Sequence record: OP991903.1
Strand: one strand, 5' to 3'
DNA length: 64,000 bases
Below the pieces are notes generated by a model. The model was not told the origin of the DNA. It did not search any database and saw nothing but the letters and a program-made list of their open reading frames with translations. Position numbers and translations under genes: made by a program. Every line of letters starts with the position of its first letter. Position 1 is the first letter of the stretch. Shown piece by piece: positions 1-52,685 of this stretch.

Positions 1-11
1 AGGATTTTGAA

Positions 12-50
12 GTATATATTCTCTCGGTGAATAAGGGTACTAAACCCCTA
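12..50 (+). promoter_or_regulatory. phiKZ-type early promoter (TATATT core) with downstream conserved hairpin-like leader
   Basis: GTATATATTCTCTCGGTGAATAAGGGTACTAAACCCCT; 34/38 identical to 50781-50818; resembles the phiKZ early TATATTAC motif. Confidence 0.7.
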
Positions 51-83
51 GATATCAATGTTACAACTACGGAGAATAACCTC

Positions 84-446
84 ATGCAACAGTATCATTT
101 TTGCATTCACACCCAGGGTAAATTGGATGTCGTGGATAATGAATGCGATGTGGAAGTGCGCATTAACCACAAGTTGATAGAGGCCATGCAGCACGCCTTT
201 AAAGAATACATTGCTGTTGGCGTGTGTGATTTTGAATTCACACTCAGTAAAGTGGCGGGGGACTACTTCTTCGACCCCACTACTCATTCCCTCATTCACT
301 TCACGGATGAGCAACGCCGCATTATCGTCACGGAAAAGTTGAAAGAAGAATGTGTGGCGGCAATGGCGCTCGACACCGAGCGGACCTACACCATCGTTGG
401 GAAGGCATCCCCTGCCCTCACCGAAGTCATGATGCAGATTCACTAA
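84..446 (+). CDS. hypothetical early protein
   Basis: ORF 27..446; start moved to ATG 84 after AACTACGGAG RBS (65-74). Confidence 0.7.
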   Translation: MQQYHFCIHTQGKLDVVDNECDVEVRINHKLIEAMQHAFKEYIAVGVCDFEFTLSKVAGDYFFDPTTHSLIHFTDEQRRIIVTEKLKEECVAAMALDTERTYTIVGKASPALTEVMMQIH

Positions 447-454
447 GTACCCCC

Positions 455-470
455 TGTTAAAACTACGGAG
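455..470 (+). promoter_or_regulatory. conserved leader/RBS motif TGTTAAAACTACGGAG
   Basis: Exact copies at 455, 3224, 3752; variants at 65, 5632, 50831; always 8-9 nt before an ATG. Confidence 0.75.
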
Positions 471-479
471 ATTAAGAAC

Positions 480-860
480 ATGTTGAATTTATTAATGAGT
501 TTGATTCTGGTTGATGAAACGAAAGCGTTGGCAAAAGAGCAAGCGGACTTTGAAAAGACCCGTGCGTTGAAGGGCGTCAAGGAACTTACCTTGAACCCGA
601 AAGAAGCCGCGAAGTTACTGGAGATTCTGGAAGAAGAGTTATCCGGTAAGATGTACGACCGTATCTACGTGATGCAATCACAGTTCGGTCGCTTTAACTC
701 GTGGTTCTGGAAACGGGACACCGAGTGGATGTTCACATGGGGTGATGCACTGCGTCTGCGTGCTTACCTGGCCTATAAACTGAACAAAGGGATTGACAAA
801 GAGTTCAAGGTTCACACCGACACCCTGAGCAAGATGCCAGTCTACCGTAAAGTTAACTAA
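480..860 (+). CDS. hypothetical protein
   Basis: 126-aa ORF preceded by leader motif with GGAG. Confidence 0.75.
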   Translation: MLNLLMSLILVDETKALAKEQADFEKTRALKGVKELTLNPKEAAKLLEILEEELSGKMYDRIYVMQSQFGRFNSWFWKRDTEWMFTWGDALRLRAYLAYKLNKGIDKEFKVHTDTLSKMPVYRKVN

Positions 861-902
861 TCCCCATTCTACAATCCTAACTATTCTTTCAGGAGTTTTA
901 TC

Positions 903-1226
903 ATGCAAATCATTCGTAACTACATCAACCGCATCGAACTGTCCAACGACGATAACCAGGTGTTCTCGTTGAACATGCACCCAACCGACCGTCAGAACCT
1001 GCGCGTCGGTCAGAAGTACCTGATGGTCACCACCATGGACCAGGAACTGAAGTTCTTCCAGGTGGACGGTCCGCTTCCGAACGATGTTCGTGAATTGACC
1101 GAGTTCTACGAGGACACCTACGGGCGTCAGATGGGCTTCACCGGTACGGTCGAATACATCGCCGTGACCGAATCTGACCGTGACTCTCACCGCGTTGTTG
1201 ACGGCGAAACTCGCCTCGTACACTAA
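903..1226 (+). CDS. hypothetical protein
   Basis: 107-aa ORF, AGGAG RBS. Confidence 0.75.
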   Translation: MQIIRNYINRIELSNDDNQVFSLNMHPTDRQNLRVGQKYLMVTTMDQELKFFQVDGPLPNDVRELTEFYEDTYGRQMGFTGTVEYIAVTESDRDSHRVVDGETRLVH

Positions 1227-1268
1227 TCACTAAAAAGTTCTCTTCGTTTGGTCGGGACATTACCGACA

Positions 1269-1293
1269 GGGGGCGTGCCGCCCCCACCTTTTT
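1269..1293 (+). terminator. intrinsic terminator
   Basis: GGGGGCG-TGC-CGCCCCC followed by a T run. Confidence 0.6.
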
Positions 1294-1314
1294 ATTCCAT
1301 AGAGGAACCTGACA

Positions 1315-1482
1315 ATGGCAAGAAATGAAACTGTTCCAGTACCACGTACACTCCCTGGTACCGGGGATTACGACAAAGCAGCGCCAGGCGAGTTCGATGA
1401 CGTACCCCTGGACCGTACCCGTTTCGAAGAAGACTTCAGTCGTATCTTCGGCGGTGACGACGTTTATCGCTTAGGCGAATAA
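1315..1482 (+). CDS. small acidic hypothetical protein (55 aa, not in ORF track)
   Basis: MARNETVPVPRTLPGTGDYDKAAPGEFDDVPLDRTRFEEDFSRIFGGDDVYRLGE; GAGG RBS; fills the gap between genes. Confidence 0.65.
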   Translation: MARNETVPVPRTLPGTGDYDKAAPGEFDDVPLDRTRFEEDFSRIFGGDDVYRLGE

Positions 1483-1492
1483 GGAATTCAAC

Positions 1493-1693
1493 ATGAAGGA
1501 CTTAGACGCTTTAATCCGTTCCGAGCACAAACGCCAGCAGGTCGATTCAACCGTCAAGTCCTTCGTTCACTACATGGCGGAGGCGATGGCTCAATCGCCG
1601 GTGCGACGCGCAGAACTCACAGAGCACACACTGGCAACAGCTCGGCTGGAGGCTGAGTTAATGCGGCAGTTATTGGAGAGCCGAATAAAATGA
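1493..1693 (+). CDS. hypothetical protein
   Basis: 66-aa ORF, AAGGA RBS, ATGA overlap with next gene. Confidence 0.7.
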   Translation: MKDLDALIRSEHKRQQVDSTVKSFVHYMAEAMAQSPVRRAELTEHTLATARLEAELMRQLLESRIK

Positions 1694-2316
1694 GCATACT
1701 GGTTTATACACGCGGGGAATTGGCCGTTGACTCTCGCGTTGTTGTAGCCCATGGCGGGAAGATGCACACTGAAGACAGTGGGCGTAAGTACCGTTACCCT
1801 CACGGCCCCTTTACCTTTCATGGTCATAAGGTCTTACTCTGGGCTTACGTCGGGAGTAACATCATGGCCCGTGCCTGGGATTATCGTTATCAACTGATGG
1901 CTGCAAAAGAGGAGACAGGATTCCTCAGCTACGCCGACACCTCTCGCTTTCTGATTCTGGAAGAAGGGATGAAGGGCGAACAGTTGATTATCACCGATGG
2001 TCCGATTTACGTCGCATCATTAGACGGGACGCTTATCGAGTACCCGCCGGAAAGCACCATCATTTTGGGTGATGCAAAAGAACGTGTTACCCACATTAGC
2101 CAATGCGTATTGGCAGCGTGGTTATACGTGGCCACGGCAATACGTCACGACGAACGTTGTGGTGGCGTGATTCACCGCTTTACCTTCAAAGAAGGGAGCG
2201 TACAAGAACAGAAACCTATCGGACGGATATTTCCGTTCACCGCACTGTACTACCAAGCGCTGGCCTGCGGCTCGCACTTTAAAGCCCACGTCCGCAAAAA
2301 ACTGACACTTAAATAA
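1690..2316 (+). CDS. Ntn-hydrolase (HslV/proteasome beta-like) family protein
   Basis: N-terminus MSILVYTRGELAVDSR in register with phage HslV-like MTTIAYxxGxLAADS; C-terminal D-x-x-C-G-G; paralog of 40049..40591. Confidence 0.55.
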   Translation: MSILVYTRGELAVDSRVVVAHGGKMHTEDSGRKYRYPHGPFTFHGHKVLLWAYVGSNIMARAWDYRYQLMAAKEETGFLSYADTSRFLILEEGMKGEQLIITDGPIYVASLDGTLIEYPPESTIILGDAKERVTHISQCVLAAWLYVATAIRHDERCGGVIHRFTFKEGSVQEQKPIGRIFPFTALYYQALACGSHFKAHVRKKLTLK

Positions 2317-2327
2317 GGGGTTGTCTC

Positions 2328-3194
2328 ATGAAAGTATCTGAATTTAAAATTAACACACTGATTATTGGTTCCCTCGTACTGGCAGAAAGCGCTAGCTACC
2401 TGCGTGATACCACCGACATCGGTAAAGCCGCATCCGGTCGTAAAGCTCAGGGTGACATGGAGCAGCGCGCTGAGGTACTGCGCAACCTGGTCCGCTTACA
2501 CCGTGACGAACCAGACTACGAACTCTCCCAGGAAGAGGAGGAGGTCATCCAGCAAGTCCGCACCTACTTCGCCGATACCATGGGGGAAATCGAAGCCGAC
2601 AAGGCGATACCAGAAGGGGAAGAGTTGTTGGTGTTACCGACCACTTACCCGGACGTGAACTTCAAAGGTTCATTCGCCGAGTTCATGACTGCCACTATCT
2701 ACTACGCCATCGCCACCCGTACCCGTAGCCAGGAAGATATCGGCACTTATCTCGATTACATCGAAAACCGTACCTGCGCACCAATGATTAAACCGATACT
2801 GAAGGCCATTGACCGTTGTGTAGATAAACACTTTATCAACGAAATGGACCTGAAGGCGACCATGGATTTTGGCCATTACCTGAATATTCATTCCTGGAAA
2901 GAAATGGGTAATGCTATCGAAAATCTGGTTAACCGTGTGAACGCCAAAGAGAGTGCACCGACTATCAGCGAACTGACGCTGTCTCTGGATGACTTCGACC
3001 GCATTGGTTCTGCGGTGGATGCGATGTACGGTACCAGTCGTGTAGCCGTCACCTTGGGTGGTCGTGAGCGTTCTGATATTCCTGGCGAACGCCCAGTGCC
3101 GCATTACACGCGTGCCAACAAGTCACGTAACCCGAATGTAGTGCTGGTGCTGAAAGGCGGTAAAATCGACGGTGTGTCTTTCACCGGTTTCTAA
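2328..3194 (+). CDS. hypothetical protein
   Basis: 288-aa ORF with RBS; no family recognised. Confidence 0.8.
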   Translation: MKVSEFKINTLIIGSLVLAESASYLRDTTDIGKAASGRKAQGDMEQRAEVLRNLVRLHRDEPDYELSQEEEEVIQQVRTYFADTMGEIEADKAIPEGEELLVLPTTYPDVNFKGSFAEFMTATIYYAIATRTRSQEDIGTYLDYIENRTCAPMIKPILKAIDRCVDKHFINEMDLKATMDFGHYLNIHSWKEMGNAIENLVNRVNAKESAPTISELTLSLDDFDRIGSAVDAMYGTSRVAVTLGGRERSDIPGERPVPHYTRANKSRNPNVVLVLKGGKIDGVSFTGF

Positions 3195-3198
3195 CCTT

Positions 3199-3224
3199 AA
3201 AAAAAAAGGGACTTCGGTCCCCTT
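3199..3224. terminator. UUCG hairpin preceded by A9 (T tract on minus strand)
   Basis: A9-GGGAC-TTCG-GTCCC. Confidence 0.5.
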
Positions 3225-3247
3225 GTTAAAACTACGGAGTGCTCGAT

Positions 3248-3745
3248 ATGTCAAGACAAACAGATTTTTTAAGAACACTTAACCTGAACAGCGGTCGCCC
3301 TAATCGCGCAATGGAATCACTCGAGATGACCATCAACCGCGGGCGCTACGGAGAACTTACCGTAAAAGAATTGACGAACTACCGCACGGATTTAGTCCGC
3401 CTTATCGAAGGTCAACGCCTTAAGACTGACCAGGGGCGCGCTTTCTACGATTACGTATTGGGTGCAGGGCGCAAGGTCGAAACCTTGCAAGAGATGGTTA
3501 GAATTGGGAAGGAGATGGTGGTTACCCTGTCGCTCACCGGTGGAACCAGAAACTTACCCATCACACCGTTAGAGTTGGTGACCAACCTCCAGTTCGCGCA
3601 CTGGGTCGTCACCAATGACATTAAGTCCCTGCGTGATTACTTTGCCACTGCCGCGGTATGCGAACAAGATAAACAATACCGGGAATGTCTACTCGCGCTC
3701 GAAGAAGACAAACTCATTAACCCACAACGCTACAGCCTTGTGTAA
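3248..3745 (+). CDS. hypothetical protein
   Basis: Start moved to ATG 3248 after leader motif 3224-3239. Confidence 0.75.
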   Translation: MSRQTDFLRTLNLNSGRPNRAMESLEMTINRGRYGELTVKELTNYRTDLVRLIEGQRLKTDQGRAFYDYVLGAGRKVETLQEMVRIGKEMVVTLSLTGGTRNLPITPLELVTNLQFAHWVVTNDIKSLRDYFATAAVCEQDKQYRECLLALEEDKLINPQRYSLV

Positions 3746-3776
3746 CTAACCTGTTAAAACTACGGAGTATTTTAAG

Positions 3777-4322
3777 ATGAACACCAACACTGACACGAAA
3801 GACATTCGCATCAACACCCTGATGACTGGCCGCATTGGCGCAGTACTGGAAGGGTTCTACTGTGGCTTCACTCCCGCTTCGGTCGCCCACTATATTCTCT
3901 ACATGGAGTTACGCCGTGGCCGTGACAGCCGGACCAAGGTGATGGAACTCCCGTATTTCCAAACGTGGTCGGCGTTGCGTAAACGGAAGATGGACGAGGA
4001 GGAAATTAACCTCATGGTCTACCCGAGTCTGGGCGAGCTGGAAACTCAGACACTCAGCGAAATCAATGGTGCGGTAATAGTGAACCGCATGGATGCAGCG
4101 AAAACAGAAACCCTGGCGGGAATGCGAGCATTGGTGGAGTGCGTGGAAACCAAACGCCTCGACGGCTGGGAATTCAACCTGTTCTTTGAAGCCGTTGTCC
4201 TTGAAGCCGAAAGACTCATGGACCACATCGGTATTACGGTCGCCCGCGGTAAAATGGGCGTACACGGTAAGTTCTACGTCTTAACTCACCCAAGCTTTGC
4301 AGTAGAAGGAGAAGCAAAATGA
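3777..4322 (+). CDS. hypothetical protein
   Basis: 181-aa ORF after leader motif 3752-3767. Confidence 0.75.
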   Translation: MNTNTDTKDIRINTLMTGRIGAVLEGFYCGFTPASVAHYILYMELRRGRDSRTKVMELPYFQTWSALRKRKMDEEEINLMVYPSLGELETQTLSEINGAVIVNRMDAAKTETLAGMRALVECVETKRLDGWEFNLFFEAVVLEAERLMDHIGITVARGKMGVHGKFYVLTHPSFAVEGEAK

Positions 4323-4792
4323 TTCGTGTATGGTTATTGGCAATCTGTGCGGTGTTCCTGGCACACCAAGTAAAAGCCCATGCGGAAGACATCCCTGTTA
4401 ACGTCCCACTCATTTTCCATTGTGAACTTGATGCGCAACACAGCGTCTCCATTATTGACGACGCTGACGGCCCACTGTACGCCTTCCATAAAGGTGACAC
4501 CACTGAACTTGCAATTTACGGGAACCGCACTAATGTGCGCTACGCGTACACGGCATTCTCCGGTGGCGGTGGGATGTATTACCGCTTCATCAAAGGTAAC
4601 ATCAGTTACGTAGTCTATTCCGCTACGCTCCCTGACGGCAGCTGGCGTGAAGGCGTGAAAGTGTACAAAGACGCCAAAGAAATCAGTGACAAGAAATGCA
4701 AGACCGAGGCAATCAGTAATGTCCCGGACTACGACCCGGTGTCAGAATTGCCGGAAGACGACCGTAACGACCAAATGACCTACGGCTTTTAA
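4319..4792 (+). CDS. putative secreted/periplasmic protein
   Basis: Sec-type signal peptide (MIRVWLLAICAVFLAHQVKAHA), two Cys in mature part, FSGGG..RF..G...YVVY beta-rich core. Confidence 0.65.
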   Translation: MIRVWLLAICAVFLAHQVKAHAEDIPVNVPLIFHCELDAQHSVSIIDDADGPLYAFHKGDTTELAIYGNRTNVRYAYTAFSGGGGMYYRFIKGNISYVVYSATLPDGSWREGVKVYKDAKEISDKKCKTEAISNVPDYDPVSELPEDDRNDQMTYGF

Positions 4793-4808
4793 TCCAGGAG
4801 ATAAAACT

Positions 4809-5081
4809 ATGGCGTATGAACACATCGGTGGCGACACCTTTAAAGTCACTGACCCGGAAGCTGTTTTACTGGCTTACCAGGAATGGCTGGCGAACGAAAT
4901 GGAAGGTAACGGTGCAGCCGACCATCCGGTTGAAGTCCCGCCTATTGACGGTTACCCAATGAACGTGACCTTCACCCGCGTCACCCGCAGCGGGGAAATC
5001 TTTGATGAATGGAAACGTGACTTGAGCGATGAGGAAATCCATCAGCTTTGGGTACAATCCGGTAACCAACAACGAGGTTAG
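4809..5081 (+). CDS. hypothetical protein, tandem paralog 1 of 3
   Basis: Shares YEH..G.(F/Y)..D...A...W(L/M)N and (Y/T)P motifs with next two ORFs. Confidence 0.75.
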   Translation: MAYEHIGGDTFKVTDPEAVLLAYQEWLANEMEGNGAADHPVEVPPIDGYPMNVTFTRVTRSGEIFDEWKRDLSDEEIHQLWVQSGNQQRG

Positions 5082-5082
5082 T

Positions 5083-5322
5083 ATGGCCGAAGAAATTGCA
5101 ACAGGTGTAGTAGAGATTGGGAACGGTCGTTTCCTGGTTAACGACGAGACTGCATACGACACCGCGTGCGTTATCTGGATGAACCGGGTCTACGGCGAGG
5201 GGGATGAAGGTCCTGATAGGGTGGTCGAAACTCGCCCTACTCGCTACCCGTGTGAAGTGCTGTGCCAACACGAAAACGAAGAAGACGGTACCGTTGCCAT
5301 CTTCACTGCCATTAACGTTTAA
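5083..5322 (+). CDS. hypothetical protein, tandem paralog 2 of 3
   Basis: Start at ATG 5083 with GAGG RBS. Confidence 0.7.
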   Translation: MAEEIATGVVEIGNGRFLVNDETAYDTACVIWMNRVYGEGDEGPDRVVETRPTRYPCEVLCQHENEEDGTVAIFTAINV

Positions 5323-5327
5323 CAAGT

Positions 5328-5355
5328 AAGGGGACACAGCGTCCCCTTCTTTTTT
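5328..5355 (+). terminator. intrinsic terminator
   Basis: AAGGGGAC-ACAGC-GTCCCCTT plus T run. Confidence 0.65.
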
Positions 5356-5368
5356 GTAAGGAATCACC

Positions 5369-5623
5369 ATGTCCACCAATAAAGGCTACGAGCACGTACA
5401 AGGGAACTTCTACATTATCCTCGACCCATTCGGTTTTGAAGAAGCGTACGCGCACTGGTTGAACGAAAACCATAAAGGGGTACTACCAGCGGTCAAACCC
5501 CTTCTGATGGAACCGTACGACACACCGTGCCACCTTGAAATCAAACGTGAGAAGATTGATGACGTGGTCACTGACACCATCGACTTCCCTGAAGACATCC
5601 CGGGTTCTGCCCTGTTCGTCTAA
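5369..5623 (+). CDS. hypothetical protein, tandem paralog 3 of 3
   Basis: 84-aa ORF, AAGGA RBS. Confidence 0.75.
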   Translation: MSTNKGYEHVQGNFYIILDPFGFEEAYAHWLNENHKGVLPAVKPLLMEPYDTPCHLEIKREKIDDVVTDTIDFPEDIPGSALFV

Positions 5624-5655
5624 CTTTAATTTGCTAAAACTACGGAGAATTGAAA

Positions 5656-6126
5656 ATGGCCTTAGACTTTGAAGTAAACCTGAATGTAACCAGCGACCGC
5701 CAGAAGTACGAACAGACTCTTATCATGGCGCTTGATGTTTACATGTCGCACATTGGTACCACACCGTACGCCAACGCAATGAAGACCCAGCAGAAAATGG
5801 CGGATGACCTGAACGAGATTCTTGGGCAGTCTCGTGAAGATGCGGTGCGGAGCTCTATGCGAAACTTGGGTAAAGTCATGCAGGAGCTGGCAATGTACAT
5901 GGGGATTGTAGGGGCGATGCGCTTCCTGTTGGCCGATGTCATTATCAAGCATGAACACCAGGCTATCGAGACGTGGTTACGCCTGGACTCCGAAGAACTA
6001 CGGGGCGTTGGATATGAATTGTCCTACCGGGTAGAAGAGAAATTGATTCACTATAAGCTTGCGTTCGCCCAGAGCAAACTTGAGATTGATACAGGAGCGG
6101 TTCCTAATCCGCTCTTTGGCCGATAA
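5656..6126 (+). CDS. hypothetical protein
   Basis: Start at ATG 5656 after TGCTAAAACTACGGAG (5632-5647). Confidence 0.75.
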   Translation: MALDFEVNLNVTSDRQKYEQTLIMALDVYMSHIGTTPYANAMKTQQKMADDLNEILGQSREDAVRSSMRNLGKVMQELAMYMGIVGAMRFLLADVIIKHEHQAIETWLRLDSEELRGVGYELSYRVEEKLIHYKLAFAQSKLEIDTGAVPNPLFGR

Positions 6127-6171
6127 CTTGCGGGGCCTGAGTGCCCCCACTTTTTCGTGCGGAGTGACACA

Positions 6172-6609
6172 ATGGGTCTGTTAAAGCAATGGGTTGTTAA
6201 GATTTTGAAGAAGAGGAAGAAAGCGCCCCCGAAAGGACCGGTCCGATTCCTGGCAACGGTGGTTGTTTTCGATAAGATGCGTTTCCCACCACTGTTAGTT
6301 CCGGTGAGTGGGGCTGCACATGCGTACTTCACGGCTGTGTCGTTGGTGGTCAGTGAGGTGTCGAAACAAGTGGGTGCGCAGTACGTTCCGGCGTCAGGGG
6401 AAGTGATGGGGTTTTACGCCGGTCAGACGGTGTCAGAACTCCTTCACCAGCGTCCGATGGCAGAAGGAACCGTACAGCACAACAGTAAGATGGTGATGGT
6501 TTCACATCGCCCTATCATGGTCCACGTGGAGAGTATCCTGGCTTGGTCAGACTCGACCGAGTACCAAGAATTCATGCGTAAACGACCTAACCATCCCGTG
6601 AGGAAATAA
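6172..6609 (+). CDS. hypothetical protein
   Basis: ATG 6172 with GGAG RBS. Confidence 0.65.
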   Translation: MGLLKQWVVKILKKRKKAPPKGPVRFLATVVVFDKMRFPPLLVPVSGAAHAYFTAVSLVVSEVSKQVGAQYVPASGEVMGFYAGQTVSELLHQRPMAEGTVQHNSKMVMVSHRPIMVHVESILAWSDSTEYQEFMRKRPNHPVRK

Positions 6610-6998
6610 TGGAAAGTCGATACACGATAAACAAGTACACGTTCAGCGATGGCTCGACGGTAGAACTTGAAGACCGCATCACCCCGTTGAACGAAATAGA
6701 AACGGACACGTCCTATCTCTCCTGTATGGTGGATGTGCGCCGTAACGACGATGGGTCATTCAGTGGCAACACCTGTTTCGTTCGTGTCGAGTTCTCTAAC
6801 CCGAAAGCCTGGGGATTGTACCGTGAATTGATGAACGACATGATGAGTGATGTCATGAGCGCGGAGACGTTGTGTGCGTTTGTGGAAGTGGTGCACGTCA
6901 TTCCAGAAAAGTCGTTTACCATCAAACACGTGACCGGTGAACTGGCACTTATCCCGATGATTTCCTGTGCCCAATCAGGAAATCTGACGGTCCATTAA
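6609..6998 (+). CDS. hypothetical protein
   Basis: 129-aa ORF coupled to previous (TAATG). Confidence 0.7.
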   Translation: MESRYTINKYTFSDGSTVELEDRITPLNEIETDTSYLSCMVDVRRNDDGSFSGNTCFVRVEFSNPKAWGLYRELMNDMMSDVMSAETLCAFVEVVHVIPEKSFTIKHVTGELALIPMISCAQSGNLTVH

Positions 6999-7000
6999 AC

Positions 7001-7028
7001 AGAGGGGCTTCGGCCCTTCTTTTTTTTT
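7001..7028 (+). terminator. intrinsic terminator
   Basis: AGAGGGGC-TTCG-GCCCTTCT plus T run. Confidence 0.8.
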
Positions 7029-7133
7029 GTTTTTTTATTACGTCATGGTGTCCTTACTATGACCGGGAGTTCTGGCGTGGGCCATTAAAGAACCGAAGGC
7101 AACTCGTATACTCGTATCTAAGGAAATAACACC

Positions 7134-7901
7134 ATGCGTAATATCGTAGACCTCGACAAAGTGTTCAACCAGCATTCTGTGGAATACACTGAACGCGAAT
7201 GGCAACTGATGAACCAGTCGTTTTTCCTCCACCTCTCCGATGTCCAATCCGGCGGAACGCTGCGGAGCATTGTCAGCAAAGAGGCGAAGGATAATGAGCG
7301 CTTAGACAACTACCTGTCTCGCAACAAGTGCGCTAATCATTCCCAGGAAATGTTTGATAAACACTTTAAAACGGCGGTCAAGGAAACGCATCGACTCTGG
7401 CTGCGTAAACGTGACATCACCTTGTTCGCCACCGGTGCGACGGAAATCGAAAAAGAACTCACGGAAATCTTGCGTGGGATTCACCACCACTTCCATACGC
7501 CCCCTACACAGTTCCTGAGCGTCTACAGCGAACCGTACCAGTTAAAAGAGCGTCTGCGGTCACACATCGACCTGAGCTTCTACAACAGTGAAGAAGTTAT
7601 GGACGTGCTAAGTAAGGTCGTTGAAGTGTTCAACACATCGGCGTACCCAACCCACACACTGAACTTTAACATCTTCGTAGTAGGGTGTACCAAACCGGCG
7701 TTGCGCGCCATGTTCGTGGTACTGGAAGACTTGCTGACGGTTGTGGCCAGGGAATTGAAAATGGTCCCGGGTTCCATTATCTGTCACGTCCAGAAGATTA
7801 CCAGTTCGAAGCTAGATGTGATTGAGGCGAGCGAAGCCCATCACGCTATCGAGCGCCATCTGGACTCAGCGCACCAGTTCAGTTGTCCGTCGACGGTGTA
7901 A
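7134..7901 (+). CDS. putative degenerate thymidylate-synthase-fold protein
   Basis: Colinear weak matches to the ThyA in this window (HFKTAVKE/HLRSIIHE; YPTH/LAPCH; LKMVPG/LNMIPG); catalytic Cys position is Thr. Confidence 0.45.
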   Translation: MRNIVDLDKVFNQHSVEYTEREWQLMNQSFFLHLSDVQSGGTLRSIVSKEAKDNERLDNYLSRNKCANHSQEMFDKHFKTAVKETHRLWLRKRDITLFATGATEIEKELTEILRGIHHHFHTPPTQFLSVYSEPYQLKERLRSHIDLSFYNSEEVMDVLSKVVEVFNTSAYPTHTLNFNIFVVGCTKPALRAMFVVLEDLLTVVARELKMVPGSIICHVQKITSSKLDVIEASEAHHAIERHLDSAHQFSCPSTV

Positions 7902-7911
7902 TTCGTTATTC

Positions 7912-7935
7912 AGAGAGGACCTCGGTCCTCTCTTT
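7912..7935 (+). terminator. intrinsic terminator
   Basis: AGAGAGGAC-CTCG-GTCCTCTCT-TT. Confidence 0.65.
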
Positions 7936-7998
7936 ATGTCGCTATGTAAGTACCGCAGAGTACCCGCTGTACCTGAAGTTCAATGTTGGGAGTTAGAA

Positions 7999-8499
7999 AT
8001 GGAAATGATGCTCGCTCGTTCGAAAGCCCCGTTAGATGACCAAGCCTACCAAGATTTTTTGACGTGGTTACAAGGTGGTAAGTTAGATGGCGTGACAATC
8101 CAGTCGGGCGCAATGAATACTTCGCTAGGCAATATCAGCCGTCCGCTGAAGATTGTTTGTAACCAGAATCCTAGTGGGACAATGTGGGGTTCGCCGTGGA
8201 ACACTAAGGTGACATACGACTCCAATCAGGGGCGCGTTATTCAACATTGCTTCCCTGACGTCGACACCATGAACGAAAACATTCTCAAACAACGGACGGT
8301 GTTGTTTAACTGGATATACCAAGGTAGCTATTCCTCATACGCCTCCGTTAACCGTAATGGGTACGCCTCGGTCGCCTACGGTACTTTTAATGGCGGCGGG
8401 TCGAACATCTTCATTTACTTCGACGCCAAGACGAAACGGATGATGCAATTGATGCCCTCGGTGGGCGGAACCCCGACTGTGTGGACCCCACCTAATTAA
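7999..8499 (+). CDS. hypothetical protein (possibly late/virion-associated)
   Basis: Start likely ATG 7999 (GGGAG RBS); TATG late-type motif at 7943. Confidence 0.6.
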   Translation: MEMMLARSKAPLDDQAYQDFLTWLQGGKLDGVTIQSGAMNTSLGNISRPLKIVCNQNPSGTMWGSPWNTKVTYDSNQGRVIQHCFPDVDTMNENILKQRTVLFNWIYQGSYSSYASVNRNGYASVAYGTFNGGGSNIFIYFDAKTKRMMQLMPSVGGTPTVWTPPN

Positions 8500-8515
8500 G
8501 AGAATAAAAGAGAAT

Positions 8516-8550
8516 AAAGAGAGGAGCATTGCGCTCCTCTCTTTTTTTTT
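8516..8550. terminator. bidirectional terminator between convergent genes
   Basis: AGAGAGGAGC-ATT-GCGCTCCTCTCT flanked by A-rich and T-rich tracts. Confidence 0.75.
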
Positions 8551-8554
8551 TGCT

Positions 8555-10738
8555 CTATCCGCGGTCACCCTTCGACAATGCCGAAAGAATCATCCCACGG
8601 TTCCCGTCAAATAACGCATTGACGCGCGAACTGACGGAGAACCACTTATCGAAGCTGCTCATGTTCGCATACCAGTTACGCTTGAGCTTGTCCATCTTGT
8701 ACACCTGCTCGGACAGGCCACATGAGGCCAGTACTGCGGTGTAGTCAGAGAAGGACGAGTCTTGCGGGAACAGGAGTTTGTTCCAGGAGGTAGGGTCGAT
8801 GACCTGCCACCCAGAGACTTCGTTCATCGGCATGTGCATGACAGAAGACAAGTCCATGATGGTCACACGAATGTCAACCCCACGGTACTTACCGTCCGAG
8901 CTCCACGGGGCGTTGGTGACGCCACGGGTAATCTGGATATCTTTAATCATCCCCAGACGACACTGACCACGACCACGGCAATACCACTCACACAGGAACG
9001 GTGCGTTGTAAGACTGCGTACCGGTTGAGCGCGGTAAGCCACCTGCCAACAACATGATGGCCGGGAGAATCTCACACTGGAAGCGAGAGAGGTCATTACC
9101 GTACGGTGCGCGCAACTGTAGGTCGAATGACATTTCCTGGAACGACGCTGACGACTCATCGTAGTGTTTCGGGATATCAACGAAGGCGTTACCGGCCAAT
9201 GCCCCCAAACCTGCAATCTGCATGGACTGCGCAAAGGACGAGGCTGCATCCTTCACAAAGTTCACCACGGTTTCCATCCCCGGGATATTGGCGATGTTAC
9301 CGTCCGCAAAAGCGTTACGCATGTTACGGTTAGATGCAGAGGTGGAGTTAATCGCAGACGCCAGCGTAGAATCACGCGCGCTGTTGGAGAACGATTCCGA
9401 TACCGATGGACGACCATCAATACGGAAGGTCACCCACATGGAACCGTCGCGCTGTGCCCCTTTGAACGTTGCGTAAGCAGAATCCACATCAGCAATCGAA
9501 CCGAAGTAGTCTGATACCGTTTCGTACGCAGAGACCAGCAAGTTCTGGTCACCCCCGCCCTGCGCCTGTAAGGCTGCCTGTTCGGTTGGAGACTTCGCGG
9601 TGTTCTCTGGGTTCGCTGTTGGTGCCGTGTTCGCCTGAGCAGGCGTAGCGGGCGCTGTAACGGTGGTCTGAACCCCTTCTTCCCCGGAACCGTCCGCTGA
9701 CTGCGTCATGTTCGCATTCAACTTCCCATCCACACCATTGTAGTACGCATTCAGGAAGTCTTCCGTCGTAGCGTAAGTAATGGTGGAGTTCTGGTTGATG
9801 TCACTTGACGCCCCGTTGTTCATCCACTTACGAATCCCCGAGATAACCCCGTTCGCAGTTCCCTGGTTTGCCTGAGCAATGCGGTTCACCCCTTCATTGA
9901 AGGCGTTCGCCAGACGCTGTGCACGGGTTGCCACCGAATAGATGTCAATCCCCGTTAGCACATTACCTTTGCCGTCCTTCGTCTTGTAGATGTCAGGAAG
10001 CATCTTGGCGTACATGTCGCGCTCATCCCCGGCAATGCGGAAGGCATCGTCGGCAGCAGACTTCACTTTCTCGTAATCCAGTTTCCCGGAGTTACCTGGC
10101 GTCATCCCCGCCTGCTCAGCAAACTTCATCCAGCTGGAAGAAGAACCGGCAGTTAGCTCCATGTTGGCGGCCACGGTGTTGGCGAAGTCGTTCACGTATT
10201 TCCAGTAGGTTCCCATCATTGGCTTCAGGTACATGAAGCGCGTTGACGTGGTGCCTGCAAAGAACTTCAGCGTAGACCCCACCAGAATGAACGGGAGCAT
10301 ACGCAGCGAGAACGCCCAACCCAACGCCTTACCGATAAAGGAACCGATGCTCCAGGAGCGACCTGTACGCACCAGACGAGAATCATCTGCGTTGTAGAAG
10401 TTACCAAAGAAGCTGGTCAAACTGTTGTACACCGGAATACCAAAGCGAATGTGCAACAGGTTAGCCGGGTCATCAATCTTCTCACTGTACCAACGGCCCA
10501 TCCCGGGAGCGTACGGCATGTCCTTCTCACGGGACAACAGGTCCATGAACCGAGGTGCCACCGGGTCGGCGTTATCACAGAACTGCGGAGGCGGGTTCAT
10601 GGCGAAGTTCCCGCCCAGCGTGGTATCGGTGAACTTGTAATACGCCGAGGTGTAGTTTCGGTAGTACGTGTCTTCCGGATTGAAGGCATTGCGTGGGAGT
10701 AGGTTACCCTGACGTACCCAACTGCTGTCAGTTATCAT
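8555..10738 (-). CDS. virion tail structural protein (phiKZ gp182-like by synteny)
   Basis: 727 aa, directly downstream of tape measure; conserved position in phiKZ-like genomes. Confidence 0.7.
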   Translation of the reverse strand: MITDSSWVRQGNLLPRNAFNPEDTYYRNYTSAYYKFTDTTLGGNFAMNPPPQFCDNADPVAPRFMDLLSREKDMPYAPGMGRWYSEKIDDPANLLHIRFGIPVYNSLTSFFGNFYNADDSRLVRTGRSWSIGSFIGKALGWAFSLRMLPFILVGSTLKFFAGTTSTRFMYLKPMMGTYWKYVNDFANTVAANMELTAGSSSSWMKFAEQAGMTPGNSGKLDYEKVKSAADDAFRIAGDERDMYAKMLPDIYKTKDGKGNVLTGIDIYSVATRAQRLANAFNEGVNRIAQANQGTANGVISGIRKWMNNGASSDINQNSTITYATTEDFLNAYYNGVDGKLNANMTQSADGSGEEGVQTTVTAPATPAQANTAPTANPENTAKSPTEQAALQAQGGGDQNLLVSAYETVSDYFGSIADVDSAYATFKGAQRDGSMWVTFRIDGRPSVSESFSNSARDSTLASAINSTSASNRNMRNAFADGNIANIPGMETVVNFVKDAASSFAQSMQIAGLGALAGNAFVDIPKHYDESSASFQEMSFDLQLRAPYGNDLSRFQCEILPAIMLLAGGLPRSTGTQSYNAPFLCEWYCRGRGQCRLGMIKDIQITRGVTNAPWSSDGKYRGVDIRVTIMDLSSVMHMPMNEVSGWQVIDPTSWNKLLFPQDSSFSDYTAVLASCGLSEQVYKMDKLKRNWYANMSSFDKWFSVSSRVNALFDGNRGMILSALSKGDRG

Positions 10739-10757
10739 TGCTTGTTACTCCGTTGCT

Positions 10758-10786
10758 AAAAAGGAAGGGGGGAGTTTCCTCCCCCT
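10758..10786 (-). terminator. intrinsic terminator (minus strand)
   Basis: GGGGGAG-TTTC-CTCCCCC with A5 on its left. Confidence 0.55.
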
Positions 10787-10790
10787 ATAG

Positions 10791-13700
10791 TTAACCGCCG
10801 CGTTTTGTACTGAACGGCAGGGCACCGCTACCATTCTGACCTAACCCCGACTTAATCGGGATATCGTTCATGGTGCGTTCTGCGGTGGACGGATTCTTCG
10901 ATTCCCCTTTCTTCTCGTTCGCGCCGCCAAAGAGGCCGCCTTCGGAGATGATTTTCACCAGCTGTTTCAGTTGGGTCAGGGAGTCGTTCTGCACGCCATA
11001 CGATTTCTCTAACCATTCCACAGCCGACCCTGTGGCTTTCGCCTGTTCGGTTACCGCCTGCTGCGTTTGACGTACTTGATTATTTTCAATCACACTACGC
11101 GCCACTTGCAGACGTTTGTGGTCAACGACCTCAGCCGATGGGTTGGCTTGCGGTTGCATCGTTGGGTTAGAGGCACTCATTCCTTTCAGGTTCTGTAGAC
11201 CGCGTCCGCTTCCCGTAGGAATTGGGTCGGTTGCAGCATTCGCGATAGACGGTACAGTTTCCTGTCCGCCAGCGGCTCCTCCTTTCGGAGAAGTGACTGA
11301 ATTGGCAATTGAGTCGTATGGGTTTGCTGCTTTAGCAGCTTGTGACAACGGTGGGGTCGTTTCCTGTCCACCGCCTGCCTGTACCTGTCCACCCGGGTTC
11401 TCGGAAGCTCCACGGTCAGACAGTGGGATGTCACCACCGCCATTCAGAATCTGTCGCCACTGGTTAGTCTTCAGAATACGGTCATCCATTCCGTTCGGCA
11501 TCCGGTCTTCGAACCAACCGTTCACCGCACGTGCTACGCTCAGAACATCGAACTTCGCACGCTTCTGTCGAATCATCGGAATGACTCGGTCTTGCCAGTA
11601 GGCCACTGCCAGTTTGTTGGCGTTCTCTGGAATCTCTGCCAGCTCAGGGTGATTCAACAAGTCGAGACCGGTCAGTTTCCCGTAGTGAGCGTAGTTGTTA
11701 CGCCCGGTCAACTGAATCCAACCACGACCTTTAAACCGCTCCCCGTCGCCAGGTTGAGTGTTCCCGAGGTTCTTGTTGTTCTCGTACTTCGCGCCCGACC
11801 CTTTCTCCAGTGTTGCAGAGAAGTTACCGGACTCGTGTGCGAGCGTTCCCATGAACAACGCCAACTCTTCTCCAGCAATCCCGTTCGCCTGTGCAAACTT
11901 CATTGCCGTGTCCGCGTGCTGTTTGGCTGAACCCGAGAGTTTCACCTTCGGCACATTACCGGACCCGTACATCCCGCCGGTCCCTGCGGACTCAAACGAG
12001 GTACCGTATGCACCCCCAGTCGGAATCCCTTGGTACCCTGATGTGTTTCCTGTGGCTTTCGCCATGTCCGCCATCAGGTTGTTCACCCGACTGGTTAGCT
12101 CAACACGACCTTTATCGGAGAGTGCATTGACTTTTACGCCCGTGTACTTCTCACGAATAGCTCGTGCTGCGGCTTCCGACTCTTGGTACTGTTCTTTCTC
12201 TTGCGCTTGCTTGAAGACTTCCAGGTTCTTTTGGATAACCGTTCCGTCCGTTCCTGCGGTTTCTCCAGGGAATGGAGACACCTTAACTGCCCACACGCTG
12301 ATGCGTTGGCCGTTAACCGTTGCACGGGCATCGGAAACGAAGTTGGCAATCTTCAGGAGGTCAGCCGCTTTGTACGACTGCCACGCGGTGAAGACGTCCT
12401 GGTTCGGGTTAATCTTCTTGGTCTGCGCCACAAAGTTCAGGAACGCTGGGAGGAAGCGGTTCTGGAACCACGTCGTCCACGTAATACGGGCATCGGTATC
12501 ACCAAAGCCCAGACTGAACTTCGCACAGTACTTGTTGTACACGTCGTCCGCATTGCCGTTGAAAGACGCCACGCCGTTATTGGCGACAGTGACGTTCTGA
12601 TACATGTCCCGTTCGAACTGCATCAGGGTATCAACGTAAATACGGTCGAGGCTGGTTAAGCCGTACACCTTGAGTCGGATAGAGGTCAGGTCATCAATGC
12701 GGTTGTTCTTCAACAACGCATCGTCCGTTGCCTGGTCACCAGTAATGCGTGCCATGGTCGAACGGTCACCCAACCCACCCATTTGGTCCAGGATACGGTT
12801 GTTTGGTCCGGCCTGGTAAGTGAGCTTCTGTCCTTTGATGACTTTCGCATCCGGGTCAACGGTCGTTGCAGCCAGATAGTTCCCGTTGGCATCGACTGCC
12901 ACTTTCCCTTTCTGCTGTTCCTGCACTTCCTGACGACCACGGTAGGTCTTCTCGTCCTTACCGTATTCTTCGACCACAGCCGCGATAGTTGCATCAACCA
13001 TGGCGGTACCCGTACGACTGGTCTGGTTCGGGAACGGCGACTGCTGCACGTAGTACGGCGATTGACTCGCCGGTGCCTCAATCTTCGTGGCCTTCGCCAG
13101 TTGTGGTTTCAAGCCGTTGTCGTAACTCCCAGACTTCGCGAGGTTTCCTTTCGGGCTCACTTTGTACAGTTCCGACACGTTCTTGATGAAGACCGGTTTA
13201 AAGCGACGGTCAAACCAGTTGGCCCAGTTGTGAACGGTGAATCGTGCAGACGGGTTAACCCCGAAGGCCTGCATCAATTCGCCGAACGGCATCGGTTGCA
13301 ATGTTACACCACCGTTACCGTCAGTCCGGGTATACTTGGAGAGTACCGTTTCCTCGAAGGCGAGGATTTTACCGCACTGCTCTTTGTTCCCCAGGTCTGC
13401 ACCGTACTGCGCCAGACGCATACGCTGCATCAGGTCGAGACGTTCAGAGTAGGCTTTCCACCCTTTGTAGATAAGGTAGGCAGCACCCCCCGCAACAGCC
13501 AGGCCCAGGACAACTGGTGCAGACAGCAGACCACCCGCCATGGAAGCGAGCGCCATCCCACCGCGCAGTAACATCCCGCCACCACCAACCGTCAAGCCTT
13601 TCGCAGCCCACCATGCCCCTTTACCTAACGCACGTGCACCACGACGTAACAAACCGCCACGACCACGACCGCCTGCACCAGAGGCCACATCCGCAATGTC

Positions 13701-16700
13701 ACCTGCCAGGTCAGCGCCCCGTTTTGCCATCAGGAGTTTTGGTAACCACCCAAAGAGTTTCCCGGCAAAGGTCCCGAAGCCCTGCTTGATTCCCATCAGC
13801 ACGCCACCGATGAGTCCGAAGCCATTCTTCAGTAACCCGAAGATACCTTCTTTCTTATCGCCCAGGGGTTTCCCTGCCTGGTAAGCGTGGTACTTATTCT
13901 TTCCTGCTTCGATTTGACGGTTGAGCCAGGAACCCGAACGCTCCTTCAACTGGTCACGGTACTCTGCGGCTTTCTGCGCAGCAACCGACCCTTTGGCCTC
14001 GTCGTACTTGCTCCGACCGAACTTCCACCATTTCCGTCCTTTGGCCACGGCTTCGTCTTTCAGTCGGGACGCCGCTTCACCCACCTTGTTCCCGGTTTCC
14101 TTCAACGCCTCACTCAGGCCTTCACCTAACGGCTTCCCTGAGAACTTGTTGTAGAGGAGGTGGAAGATGCGCTTCAGCCAGTAGGTCTGACCAATCTCCG
14201 GTTTTGTCCCACCCAACAGTTTACCCAGTCCGGTACCGATGCCCTTGATGCCGTTCTTCGCCCAATCCAGCAGACGCTTCGGTGCGTTCCACAACCCTTT
14301 GACTTTATCACGCGCCCAACCGGCTGCATTCTTGAACTTGGTCAAGAGCGAAGTCAGTTTGTTGCCACGTGAGTCGTACAGGCCCCGTTCGATTTCATCT
14401 TTGGAGATGACCACCTTGCGTTCGCCCGAGATGTTATCGAAAGTGATGATGTCGCCATCAATGTCCCCGAGGGTCTTCAACGGTTTCCCGGTGACGCCGG
14501 AATAGTAGAAGCCACGGTAGAACAAATCACCTTTACAACGAGGGGTGGTTTCACCCAACACGTAGATATCCGGAGGTGCCATCAGGAACTCTTTCGCCCC
14601 CTGCATCCCCTTCTTGATGTTCGCCCACATGCTGGTCACCGGGTTCGTTACCCAACCCATGACGCGACTACCCGCGTTCTTCACTCGACCGATGACACCG
14701 TCTTTGATTTTCTTGCCCAGCGAGTTCAGCAGTCCACCCTGGAACTCTTCTTCACTCAGGACCTGTTTCCCTAAGATGGTGTCGTACACCGCTCCGGTGA
14801 TGTCCTTGATGTTGAAAATCGGTTTCCCGGTCTTCATGTCACGGTAACGACCTTCTGCGAACCCGGCCATATCCAGCGCCCGACGGAACCCGTTGACGCC
14901 CATGACGTAAACATCGCTGCGCAGTGCATCTACCTTGGAACCGAAGTTCTTCAGCTTCTCACTGCCCCAGTTGAACATCTTCCGACCCGGTATCTTCTTC
15001 CTGGCCCAGTTCAGTGCCCGCATCGGGTAGCCGCTGATGTCCCAGATTTTCTTCCCAGCCCAGGTTCCGCCTTTACGTGCACGAGAGAGCGCCCGACGAA
15101 TCAGGGACTTCTTCCGTTCACCGGCACCCCCTGTTGAGGCACCCCCGGTTCCGTTCAAGGTGACACCCTGCTCGAGGATTTCCGCCACTTCATCAATGGC
15201 ATCAATCATGTGCTGGTACATCTCGTGGTCGGTGTGCCCTTTCGGTTCGAGGAAGGTCATCAGTTCATCGGTCTGGTCACGAATCGCTTTAATGATACCG
15301 CGGCCATTTCGGTTACTGATGTTCCCTTCTTTTTCCTCGTGTCCCTTAAAGCGGTCGAACATCCCACCGAACCCACCGGCAGCAGGCGGCGGTGGAGTAG
15401 GGCCACCACCCAGACCGGAGGAGAACCCATTCGCCCCCGCTGCGGGGTTATGGGGGTCGATACGTACACGTTGGCGTTTGTTCGCTAACAGGTCAGCAGA
15501 ACGCTCGTCGTAGTACTTGGTGTTCATGACCCAGTTGGAACCGTCCCAGATAACCAGACCTTCAGCAATCGCCGCTTCCATGTCACCCGAGTTAGTAATC
15601 CCGGTAATAGAAGGACGTAACGCTTTAACCCGGTCCTGGCCCCGCTTGAAGATTTGGGAATCCTGGTCACGCAGGTCGTTACGGGATTTCCACAGGTGGG
15701 CGGAGTACTTCCCGGTTGCCGCATCGTGCTGGAGACCGTAGCGGTCTTTCATCAGGATAGACAACAAACGGTTCCCACGTCCCGTTACACCATCGACACC
15801 TTTATTAGCAATTGCTTCCGGGTCCCAACGGTTAACGCCGTGCATCTCTTTCATCAGGTGACGTTCCAGTACATCGCGGTCTTTACCCCGCAACTTCCCG
15901 GTCGGGTCAATCTGGTCAACGAGCTGTTTGACGTACCCTTGCTGGTCTTCGATGTCGGTGTCATTCAGTGCAGATTTTCGCACCAGTTTCACCGCTTCAT
16001 CGAATTGGACGAAAGCGCCCTTCTGACCGCTGTACACCGTGCGCGGCAAGTTCTCATTGCCCGTTCGCATGATGTCAATGCTATGTAGGATGCGGGAGAG
16101 GTACCCAGGAATGATTTCTTCCAGGGCACGGACTTTACGCATCTCCATGTCATTGTTACCGGTCAAACCGGATAGACCACCGGTACGGACCACACCCCCG
16201 TCGTTATACGACTGGTCGAACGGTTTGAGCGCGCTGTGCAGGAAACCACCGTACTGTTGCTTACGGGCGAGATTCCGCATGTTCGCAGGCAAGTTCGTGG
16301 CAAACTCGTTCGCGTAACCAAAGAGGTTAGAGGCACCCTGACGGTAAGGTAAACGTTTACCAACCCAGGCCCCTGCTCTGGTTCCCACGCGTTGCATGAG
16401 AGACTGCCCGAACAGTTCCAGGGCCATCTCTTTGGGGTCCATCCCCATGTCACGCATTTGCTGCGCCTGCATCTCAATATCGTCAGCCATCTGACGACCG
16501 CTGTCGAAGAAGCCGCGGAACTGCTGCATCTTCTCCTTGGCCATGTCAGCGTAGCCTTTACCGACCTTGCTCATGTAGTTACGCATGAACTCGCCGATGT
16601 TCTCCTGAGCAGCACCAAAGAGACGCTGACGCGCTAAGCGGTGGAAGTGTTCCGACGCTTCTTCTTTGGCAAACTCTGGGAGACCGGTGTTCTTCACGAT

Positions 16701-29261: not shown

Positions 29262-29283
29262 AAGTATACATTACTTAGGTGAA
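29262..29283 (+). promoter_or_regulatory. early-type promoter
   Basis: AAGTATACATTACTTAGGTGAA fits TAYATTAC-N3-RRTGAM consensus. Confidence 0.6.
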
Positions 29284-29400
29284 CAGTAGTTCATGAAACC
29301 GAATGCGTAGTTTAAATTCTACGCATTCAACCCACTCTGTGGGGGTATACCTTCGAAGATATCCCCGCTAATAAAACCCAAGACACTCAAGGAACATTCC

Positions 29401-32835: not shown

Positions 32836-33033
32836 ATGGCAAGCCGGGCGAGTTTACAGAAGGCACAACGGCACGGTCGAAAGGTGCGGAACCTCCGCAC
32901 TTGTCGTAAAGAAGGTTTCAACTCAGGGTTCCACGACCAGGAACACCTGAACACCTGTCGTCGTCACGGGGATATTGCTGAGCTTTCTAATCGGGGCTCA
33001 GAAATATATTACTTAGATGAATCTGCTAGTTAG
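32836..33033 (+). CDS. small basic hypothetical protein
   Basis: 65 aa; early promoter motif overlaps its 3' end. Confidence 0.5.
   Translation: MASRASLQKAQRHGRKVRNLRTCRKEGFNSGFHDQEHLNTCRRHGDIAELSNRGSEIYYLDESAS
33002..33021 (+). promoter_or_regulatory. early-type promoter
   Basis: Exact TATATTAC at 33005-33012 followed by TTAGATGAA. Confidence 0.7.
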
Positions 33034-45623: not shown

Positions 45624-45660
45624 AGTCTATATTACCCGGGTGAAGCAATAACCTTCACCC
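45623..45660 (+). promoter_or_regulatory. early-type promoter followed by hairpin
   Basis: TATATTAC at 45628-45635; hairpin GGGTGAAG-CAATAAC-CTTCACCC. Confidence 0.7.
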
Positions 45661-50780: not shown

Positions 50781-50842
50781 GTATATATTCTCTTGGTGAC
50801 ATAGGGTACTAAACCCCTTAACTTATTGATTAAACTACGGAG
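50781..50842 (+). promoter_or_regulatory. early promoter plus conserved leader and AACTACGGAG RBS
   Basis: 34/38 identity to 12-49; TAAACTACGGAG at 50831-50842. Confidence 0.7.
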
Positions 50843-50850
50843 ATTGAATC

Positions 50851-51060
50851 ATGTTAGGATTCGCAAAAAGCATTGTTGACAATTTAGATGAAGTTAAAAT
50901 CCGCGAAGACTTCGAGCGAATGAAGACCCAGAAGGCACAGCGTTATGCTGAGCAAGAAAACCGGGACGCGGGGGTTGAAGAGATGGTCGGGGAAGAGGAC
51001 TGTGACCCGGTCGGTCGTAGTAGCCGAGCAAAGGATGCTTTTCGGAGGGCGCAATCATGA
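50851..51060 (+). CDS. small early hypothetical protein
   Basis: 69 aa after early promoter. Confidence 0.7.
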   Translation: MLGFAKSIVDNLDEVKIREDFERMKTQKAQRYAEQENRDAGVEEMVGEEDCDPVGRSSRAKDAFRRAQS

Positions 51061-52635: not shown

Positions 52636-52658
52636 AAGAACTATATTACCGTAGTGAC
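52636..52658 (+). promoter_or_regulatory. early-type promoter
   Basis: TATATTAC at 52642-52649 followed by CGTAGTGAC. Confidence 0.7.
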
Positions 52659-52685
52659 TGCTAAGTTAATAGGAGCAGGTACAAC

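Follow-up and report, generated by a model that had tools for sequence, protein, structure and literature searches.

A leader motif upstream of seven small genes

The stretch of DNA analysed here (hereafter the window) comprises bases 1–64000 of Erwinia phage vB_Ea277G (OP991903.1, 218,506 bp, genus Iapetusvirus), and our subject is a short sequence, TGTTAAAACTACGGAG, that stands directly in front of the start codons of a set of small genes. The relative PhiEaH1, which is 98.8% identical to window 1–8000 by BLASTN, is annotated with a nuclear shell protein, the tubulin PhuZ and several split RNA polymerase beta-type subunits, and vB_Ea277G can therefore be regarded as a nucleus-forming relative of phage phiKZ. 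Intergenic DNA makes up 5.6% of its genome. The motif leads seven open reading frames (ORFs) of 69–181 codons, five of which belong to one block of small genes. These features are listed below, in window coordinates except where stated.

84–6126, + strand: block of small genes, five of them with the motif (84–446, 480–860, 3248–3745, 3777–4322 and 5656–6126)
59–74, + strand: motif copy 1, TGTTACAACTACGGAG, 15/16 letters, 26.2 bits; ATG of gene 84–446 9 nt on
455–470, + strand: motif copy 2, exact, 28.6 bits; ATG of gene 480–860 9 nt on
3224–3239, + strand: motif copy 3, exact; ATG of gene 3248–3745 8 nt on
3752–3767, + strand: motif copy 4, exact; ATG of gene 3777–4322 9 nt on
5632–5647, + strand: motif copy 5, TGCTAAAACTACGGAG, 15/16 letters, 26.3 bits; ATG of gene 5656–6126 8 nt on
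50827–50842, + strand: motif copy 6, TGATTAAACTACGGAG, 14/16 letters, 25.3 bits; ATG of gene 50851–51060 8 nt on
Genome 94367–94382 (beyond the window), + strand: motif copy 7, 25.2 bits; 7-nt spacer to gene 94390–94758

A position weight matrix scan of the whole 218,506-bp genome on both strands, with a family cut-off of at least 25 bits, returned exactly seven sites at 25–29 bits. The next best site scored 16.5 bits, and since nothing falls between these values the motif constitutes a discrete family. Six copies lie inside the window and the seventh at genome 94367. The exact copies at 455, 3224 and 3752 and the 15/16 copy at 5632 that the original prediction had listed were reproduced; its 'shorter copies' at 65 and 50831 are present, but they are the ends of near-full copies that begin at 59 and 50827, and the copy at 94367 had been missed. 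Each of the seven lies on the + strand in intergenic DNA (probability that all seven are intergenic by chance, 1.7e-9), with GGAG 7–9 nt 5′ of an annotated ATG; the spacing of 8–9 nt first proposed holds for all six copies in the window. Allowing up to three mismatches, the window contains seven matches where 0.5 are expected, and none of 100 shuffled sequences reached seven. The seventh of these matches (18718, minus strand, three mismatches, within a coding sequence) was dismissed as noise.

The copies agree most closely at their 3′ ends. Six mismatches occur across the family, all at positions 2–6, and the 10-nt core AACTACGGAG is invariant in every copy (P=0.003, or 0.016 with GGAG left out), as is the AACTAC directly 5′ of GGAG within it. 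The description of the leader as invariant was thus correct for its 3′ 10 nt and incorrect for positions 2–6. On the other side of GGAG, A-W-T is found in five of the seven copies, compared with six of 94 other GGAG-type ribosome sites (Fisher P=1e-4), and because of this enrichment the element can be taken to be approximately 19 nt long. Its consensus is TGTTAAAACTAC-GGAG-AWT, with constraint strongest in the 3′ two-thirds. Since GGAG lies 5–10 nt before the start in 105 of the 249 phage genes, the 7–9 nt spacing of the motif is ordinary for this genome and its GGAG is a normal Shine-Dalgarno (SD) sequence, as had been supposed. We conclude that the motif is real, specific and constrained beyond the SD.

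Related sequences elsewhere in the genome were also located. AAAACTAC and its close variants have no intergenic occurrence, genome-wide, that is uncoupled from GGAG and ATG, and outside the motif copies hardly any AAAANTAC or AAANTTAC is to be found between genes. Enrichment of intergenic k-mers gave three signals, namely terminator T-runs and hairpins, the octamer TATATTAC (see below) and the motif itself. The sole exact AAACTACGGAG (an 11-mer) away from a gene start lies at genome 191322–191332, inside the coding sequence 190147–192723; the chance expectation for such a copy is about 0.1, and this one is mutated to GGGG in G001, a close relative from IMG/VR. At genome 91014, GAATTAAACTAAGGAG stands 7 nt 5′ of an ATG and is possibly a decayed eighth member of the family.

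The proteins encoded downstream of the seven copies are dissimilar to one another and are not paralogues. They match no Pfam or PHROG family, have no neighbours in the ESM Atlas and no homologue in the Serratia phages PCH45 or Moabite, and none of the seven genes carries a structural annotation in PhiEaH1. The possibility that the motif is a by-product of gene duplication was ruled out, given that the proteins are unrelated.

Probable early promoter boxes and a promoter alternative

A 22-nt box, GT(A/C)TATATTAC-N4-(G/T)TGA, occurs at 19 genome sites that score at least 18 bits in a matrix scan. Eighteen are intergenic and the nineteenth is at the 3′ end of a coding sequence; every site is on the + strand. 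One box precedes the shell-protein gene (genome 112086) and another the RNA polymerase subunit genes (125937). An identical type of box, TATATTAC-N4-(G/T)TGA, precedes phiKZ genes 005 and 006, and the octamer occurs in phiKZ 33 times in forward and 9 times in reverse orientation, the former close to the 28–32 early promoters reported for that phage (PMC8244752). On account of the box shared with genes 005 and 006 and of this octamer count, the 19 sites are very probably early promoters of the virion RNA polymerase, and would fire as they do in phiKZ. We found no published promoter map for Iapetusvirus. The boxes of the window and the hairpin that accompanies two of them are as follows.

12–33, + strand: early promoter box, GTATATATTCTCTCGGTGAATA, 26.1 bits, 25 nt upstream of motif copy 1
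35–47, + strand: small hairpin GGGT-ACTAA-ACCC where the early transcript is predicted to begin, part of an extended repeat detected by BLAST and by eye
50781–50802, + strand: early promoter box, 26.0 bits; the hairpin comes next, and motif copy 6 lies 24 nt beyond the box
29264–29285, 33002–33023, 45625–45646 and 52639–52660, + strand: remaining early boxes in the window (13 more lie elsewhere in the genome)

Three sites share a sub-type of the early box, TATATATTCTCTnGGTGA (12–47, 50781–50816 and genome 93606–93640), and each is followed by the GGGT-ACTAA-ACCC hairpin, which may serve as an mRNA-stabilising or a recognition stem. Motif copies 1 and 6 have in common a 75-nt module in which promoter and hairpin precede the motif. 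In these phages the centre of an early promoter element falls about 10 nt before the transcription start site (TSS) (PMC7598289), and copies 1 and 6 should accordingly be placed within predicted early 5′ untranslated regions (5′UTRs) of about 55 nt. Copy 7 lies past a terminator in the unit begun by the third box of the sub-type (93606).

The remaining copies are found further inside the block. Copies 2, 4 and 5 stand between genes, 6–9 nt after the preceding stop codon and with no terminator before them; copy 2, for instance, is 8 nt past the stop codon of gene 84–446. Copy 3 is immediately preceded by the hairpin GGGACTTCGGTCCC (3209–3222), which has no T-run on the + strand. The box at 12–33 is the sole early box in the gene block 1–8500, and the several internal terminators there leave no room for extra promoters. 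The block looks like a single early operon whose terminators leak, and within it the five local motif copies would be transcribed. The designation of the motif-led genes as early is therefore plausible, with phiKZ-type early boxes at the head of the block (12–33) and at 50781–50802.

The hairpin GGGACTTCGGTCCC recurs at approximately seven further places in the genome (eight copies of GGACTTCGGT), mostly with a T-run on its 3′ side, as a terminator. The one at 3209, which is preceded by an A-run and lacks such a T-run, is formally a minus-strand terminator within a block of + strand genes.

The motif might itself be a promoter. The likeness to the middle-promoter element of phiKZ noted in the original prediction was borne out: that element has been described as AAanTTACc, centred about 24 nt before the TSS (PMC4666361), or as an A-run followed by TACT and centred at −22 (PMC8244752). 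AAAACTACG, from the motif, shares seven of nine letters with the published P78M example AAAATTACC (PMC4666361) and, as in the second description, consists of an A-run and then TAC. The two phages belong to the same family. They have the early box in common, so that other promoter classes may be common to them as well. With the published geometry, however, in which the element is centred 22–24 nt before the TSS, transcription would start 7–9 nt inside every one of the seven ORFs, as had been argued from the first. The middle TSSs of phiKZ lie some 30–40 nt before the ATG, whereas the motif abuts the SD and is centred 15–17 nt before the ATG.

This difficulty would be avoided by a compact middle-like promoter, at which a phage RNA polymerase recognises AAAACTAC and starts at or beside GGAG, giving an mRNA that begins with its SD. 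The start could be, for example, the G that follows TAC, just as phiKZ late transcripts begin at the G of TATG, an initiator that TACG resembles. In phiKZ, early and middle promoters occur in tandem at gene 054, and motif copies 3 and 7 have hairpins immediately before them. Nevertheless, phiKZ requires every letter of TATG, so TACG would fail there; its 5′UTRs are mostly 31–40 nt long and no leaderless transcript was found in that phage. In the other upstream regions of vB_Ea277G, too, the ATG follows the early box or TATG at a distance of at least 20 nt. The numbers are also at odds, with seven copies here, before small genes and none before replication or structural genes, compared with 28–33 middle promoters in phiKZ, which serve replication and some structural genes. 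Furthermore, the element is never separated from GGAG and ATG in intergenic DNA, and a more canonical middle-like sequence, AAAAAATTACT with a TATG 14 nt on, exists at genome 81936–81967. A compact promoter therefore strikes us as unlikely, if still deserving of attention.

The region around this last site, genome 81903–81967, comprises an early box, AAAAAATTACT 16 nt later (from 81936) and TATG after a further 14 nt, which corresponds to the layout described for phiKZ promoters of the early and middle classes where these occur in tandem. It contains the sole clear intergenic AAANTTAC of the genome.

Promoters of the bacterial type were also considered. A search for sigma-70 promoters (−35 and −10 hexamers at 16–18 nt spacing) predicted no site at any motif copy, and the eight predictions in 1–9000 compare with 7.8 expected from shuffled sequence. 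The motif was accordingly rejected as a sigma-70 promoter.

The motif as a proposed signal on early mRNA

Since a middle-promoter TSS would fall within the ORFs, and since two copies lie in predicted early 5′UTRs, a role at the level of RNA is the better reading, in agreement with the original prediction. In our estimation there is about an even chance that the motif is a start-associated sequence that acts on RNA at translation initiation and marks seven early genes together. A composite element of about 19 nt around the SD would be transcribed within early mRNAs, where GGAG would recruit the 30S subunit as at other phage genes. The invariant AACTAC and the AWT would most likely be read in a sequence-specific manner by a trans-acting factor, for which a phage protein or nuclease, host S1 and the ribosome are candidates. 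Seven unrelated early genes, scattered in operons, could in this way be switched or boosted jointly and independently of neighbours on the same transcript. A booster, an operator and a cleavage site are all compatible with such a role.

Several simple RNA-level mechanisms were examined. The suggestion that the leader enhances translation by pairing with 16S rRNA was not upheld: with E. coli rRNA as a proxy, the best duplex was no stronger than those formed by shuffled motifs, and an rRNA-pairing enhancer was rejected. A conserved hairpin within the motif was discarded too, as the 4-bp stem CUGU/ACGG that is possible in two to four copies is broken in the rest. No antisense partner, tRNA or Rfam family corresponding to the motif was found in the phage. 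Start regions with the motif are somewhat less folded than average (mean −7.9 versus −11.2 kcal/mol, P=0.014); the predicted accessibility of their SD is not better than that of other genes (P=0.14).

A particular form of RNA-level action, with shut-off as its outcome in place of a boost, would be coordinated inactivation or processing of the mRNAs by an endoribonuclease that cuts in or beside the SD at the switch from early to middle expression, in the manner of RegB and S1 in phage T4. Early genes of T4 carry the site GGAGRAYARAA, most often GGAGAAUAAAA, where the ribosome binds (PMC1702504), and RegB/S1 sites and RegA operators both provide gene-specific post-transcriptional control (PMC1702504, PMC3014915). 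The motif resembles these signals in occupying the SD of a subset of early genes and in having A-A-U after GGAG. GGAGAAU is present in copies 1, 5 and 7, four of the seven copies match 9–10 of the 11 positions of the RegB site, which there coincides with part of the 3′ half of the motif, and all copies fall within predicted early transcripts. The T4 sites, however, are conserved only 3′ of GGA, whereas conservation here is strongest 5′ of GGAG, where RegB sites vary; the 3′ tail is poor in copies 3 and 4, and copies 3, 4 and 6 match the site poorly. Moreover, a six-frame search of the whole genome recovered no RegB homologue (PF10715). Cleavage of this kind is, in our view, improbable.

Comparison of strains bears on whether the motif is maintained at all. 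Neither PhiEaH1 nor G001 shows a change in any of the seven copies. A fourth strain, assembled as long contigs in four sequencing runs, has single-base indels that adjoin copies 2, 4 and 5 (at 450, 3769 and 5647) and switch the spacer between GGAG and ATG between 8 and 9 nt; among the differences listed for this strain, none of the indels falls within a motif copy, and copies 1 and 2, the two that the list of substitutions covers, are free of substitutions.

The motif could instead be a strong ribosome-site cassette that acts only in cis, or a relic of recombination, copied in front of new genes through short stretches of homology and with no factor to read it. In T4-type phages, repeated cassettes of promoters and stem-loops shuffle genes. 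The absence of homologues of all seven genes from PCH45 and Moabite is consistent with recent acquisition, copies 1 and 6 have the whole 75-nt module in common, and the somewhat weaker folding of the motif starts would suit a strong ribosome site. Against this, SD accessibility is predicted to be no better than at other genes, and no gain or loss of a gene between strains is bounded by motif copies. The pattern of conservation also differs from neutral decay: ten letters are invariant, six of them beyond the SD, and all six mismatches are at the 5′ end, while the copy away from a gene start has decayed and the copies at starts have not. We accordingly attach little probability to a cassette or relic.

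A number of observations weigh against action on RNA through a dedicated factor. No candidate for such a factor emerged, homologues of RegA and RegB and a complementary phage RNA all having been sought and not found in the genome. PCH45 and Moabite have neither the motif nor a comparable family of SD leaders, their largest clusters of such leaders having 3–5 members compared with 7–9 in vB_Ea277G; the motif is thus not general to nucleus-forming phages. The unchanged copies in the relatives are weak evidence, because these relatives are 94–99% identical. The fourth strain, which is 97.7% identical, comes from four small runs labelled as metatranscriptomic RNA-Seq, and its contigs of 25–175 kb look like genomic DNA or a virion preparation, not transcripts. 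Finally, there is the resemblance of AAAACTACG to the phiKZ middle element, a loose similarity of GTnnAnAnTAC to the early box, and the location of copies 3 and 7 directly 3′ of hairpins, as a promoter might be.

Start-associated sequences in other phages

The closest counterparts of the motif are the start-associated sequences (SAS) of the Cluster K mycobacteriophages, which are 13-bp asymmetric repeats, GGGATAGGAGCCC, present in 11–19 copies (PMC3203893). They are located 3–7 bp before starts, in one orientation and only at non-structural genes of different families, and they include an SD core flanked by conserved positions that cannot pair with 16S rRNA (PMC3203893). About half have an upstream extension, ESAS (PMC3203893), which was later shown to hold a putative promoter (PMC11373665). 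Phages of Microbacterium cluster EF have their own version of the SAS (PMC7302621), and in 2024–2025 the role of SAS in general was still described as unknown (PMC11373665, PMC12699233).

The motif of vB_Ea277G shares the properties of the class defined by Pope et al. (2011). It is a short asymmetric repeat in several copies, conserved far beyond ordinary ribosome sites, that takes the position of the ribosome-binding site in one orientation, contains the SD core and has conserved flanks that 16S pairing does not explain. Its seven copies stand only before non-structural genes of different families, where SAS families have about 7–19. In two of the seven copies an early box and hairpin lie about 25 nt upstream, a feature reminiscent of the ESAS although it lacks the ESAS inverted repeat. 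The sequence itself is unrelated (GGGATAGGAGCCC or GGGAAAGGACCCC, as against TGTTAAAACTACGGAGAWT here), and conservation is mostly 5′ of the SD, in contrast to the symmetric GGG...CCC flanks of SAS. The setting is different as well: the host is Gram-negative, and the jumbo phage is lytic, forms a nucleus and has RNA polymerases of its own. In its anatomy the family described here would be a further member of this known class, a kinship that the original prediction had missed.

A second counterpart comes from the FelixO1-like Citrobacter phage Mordin, in which a 26-bp repeat before eight hypothetical genes was likened to SAS by the authors (PMC4611695). As with the motif, it precedes small hypothetical genes (about 8–12) in one arm of the genome of an enterobacterial phage and includes the SD. 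The cores are also close, TAAACT-GGAGAAT in Mordin and TAAAACTAC-GGAGAAT here, with the same letters bar 2–3 extra nt. The Mordin repeat, on the other hand, is conserved right up to the ATG and over at least 14 nt upstream, and Mordin is an unrelated phage that depends on host RNA polymerase, unlike vB_Ea277G. The likeness may be due to chance, to convergence or to a constraint that the enterobacterial ribosome or S1 imposes on both phages.

Within the Mordin sequence (KT363872), we counted approximately 12 copies of AACAATCCTAAACTGGAGAATCTAAAATG before small hypothetical genes in 8685–15240. Mordin gene 137, annotated as 'similar to RegB', gave no match to the RegB family in Pfam and no significant match in vB_Ea277G.

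A bolder version of the RNA-level reading treats the 19-nt leader as the address label of a phage-specific system for translation or mRNA fate that reads AACTAC-GGAG-AWT. The seven genes would then form an early regulon, onto whose mRNAs a phage factor, possibly one that acts on the ribosome in the manner of the bL12-anchor protein (55814), would load ribosomes or from which it would remove them. We regard this as very improbable. Were it true, the near-identical core in Mordin would suggest that different phages exploit one and the same vulnerability of the enterobacterial ribosome or S1.

SAS have been noted for 15 years in a few phage groups. vB_Ea277G offers a small, clean set of seven sites with a sharp core in a genetically tractable Gram-negative host, and its promoters are now predictable through the phiKZ-type early box mapped at 19 sites; for these reasons, the question whether a phage singles out some of its early mRNAs for special translation or decay becomes directly testable. 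The analysis also gives a first map of promoters and leaders for Iapetusvirus, whose members are candidate phages for biocontrol of fire blight, and in Erwinia the short leader could be put to use as a strong or a regulated start of translation.

BLASTN of window 1–8000 in near and distant modes matched only vB_Ea277G and PhiEaH1; beyond Iapetusvirus, the closest phages are Serratia phages Moabite, 2050HW and PCH45 and Klebsiella phage FBKp24, with terminase identities of only 52–59%. No distant relative bearing the motif was found among GenBank phages, IMG/VR or the JGI metagenomes. A pattern scan of IMG/VR identified one close relative, G001, the remaining matches being single and due to chance, and G001 was also the sole match in protein-guided searches for the locus. 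Three matches in the JGI metagenomes were all unrelated and attributable to chance, and a loose pattern (17 specified bases) gave at least 120 scattered chance matches in a genome collection, with no Erwiniaceae among the 80 listed.

One further feature of the gene block concerns gene 2328–3194, which encodes a 288-residue early protein. It contains a hypervariable segment of 434 nt (2441–2876) that keeps its length in the 97.7% identical relative but has diverged there beyond alignment, between flanks that are about 98% identical.

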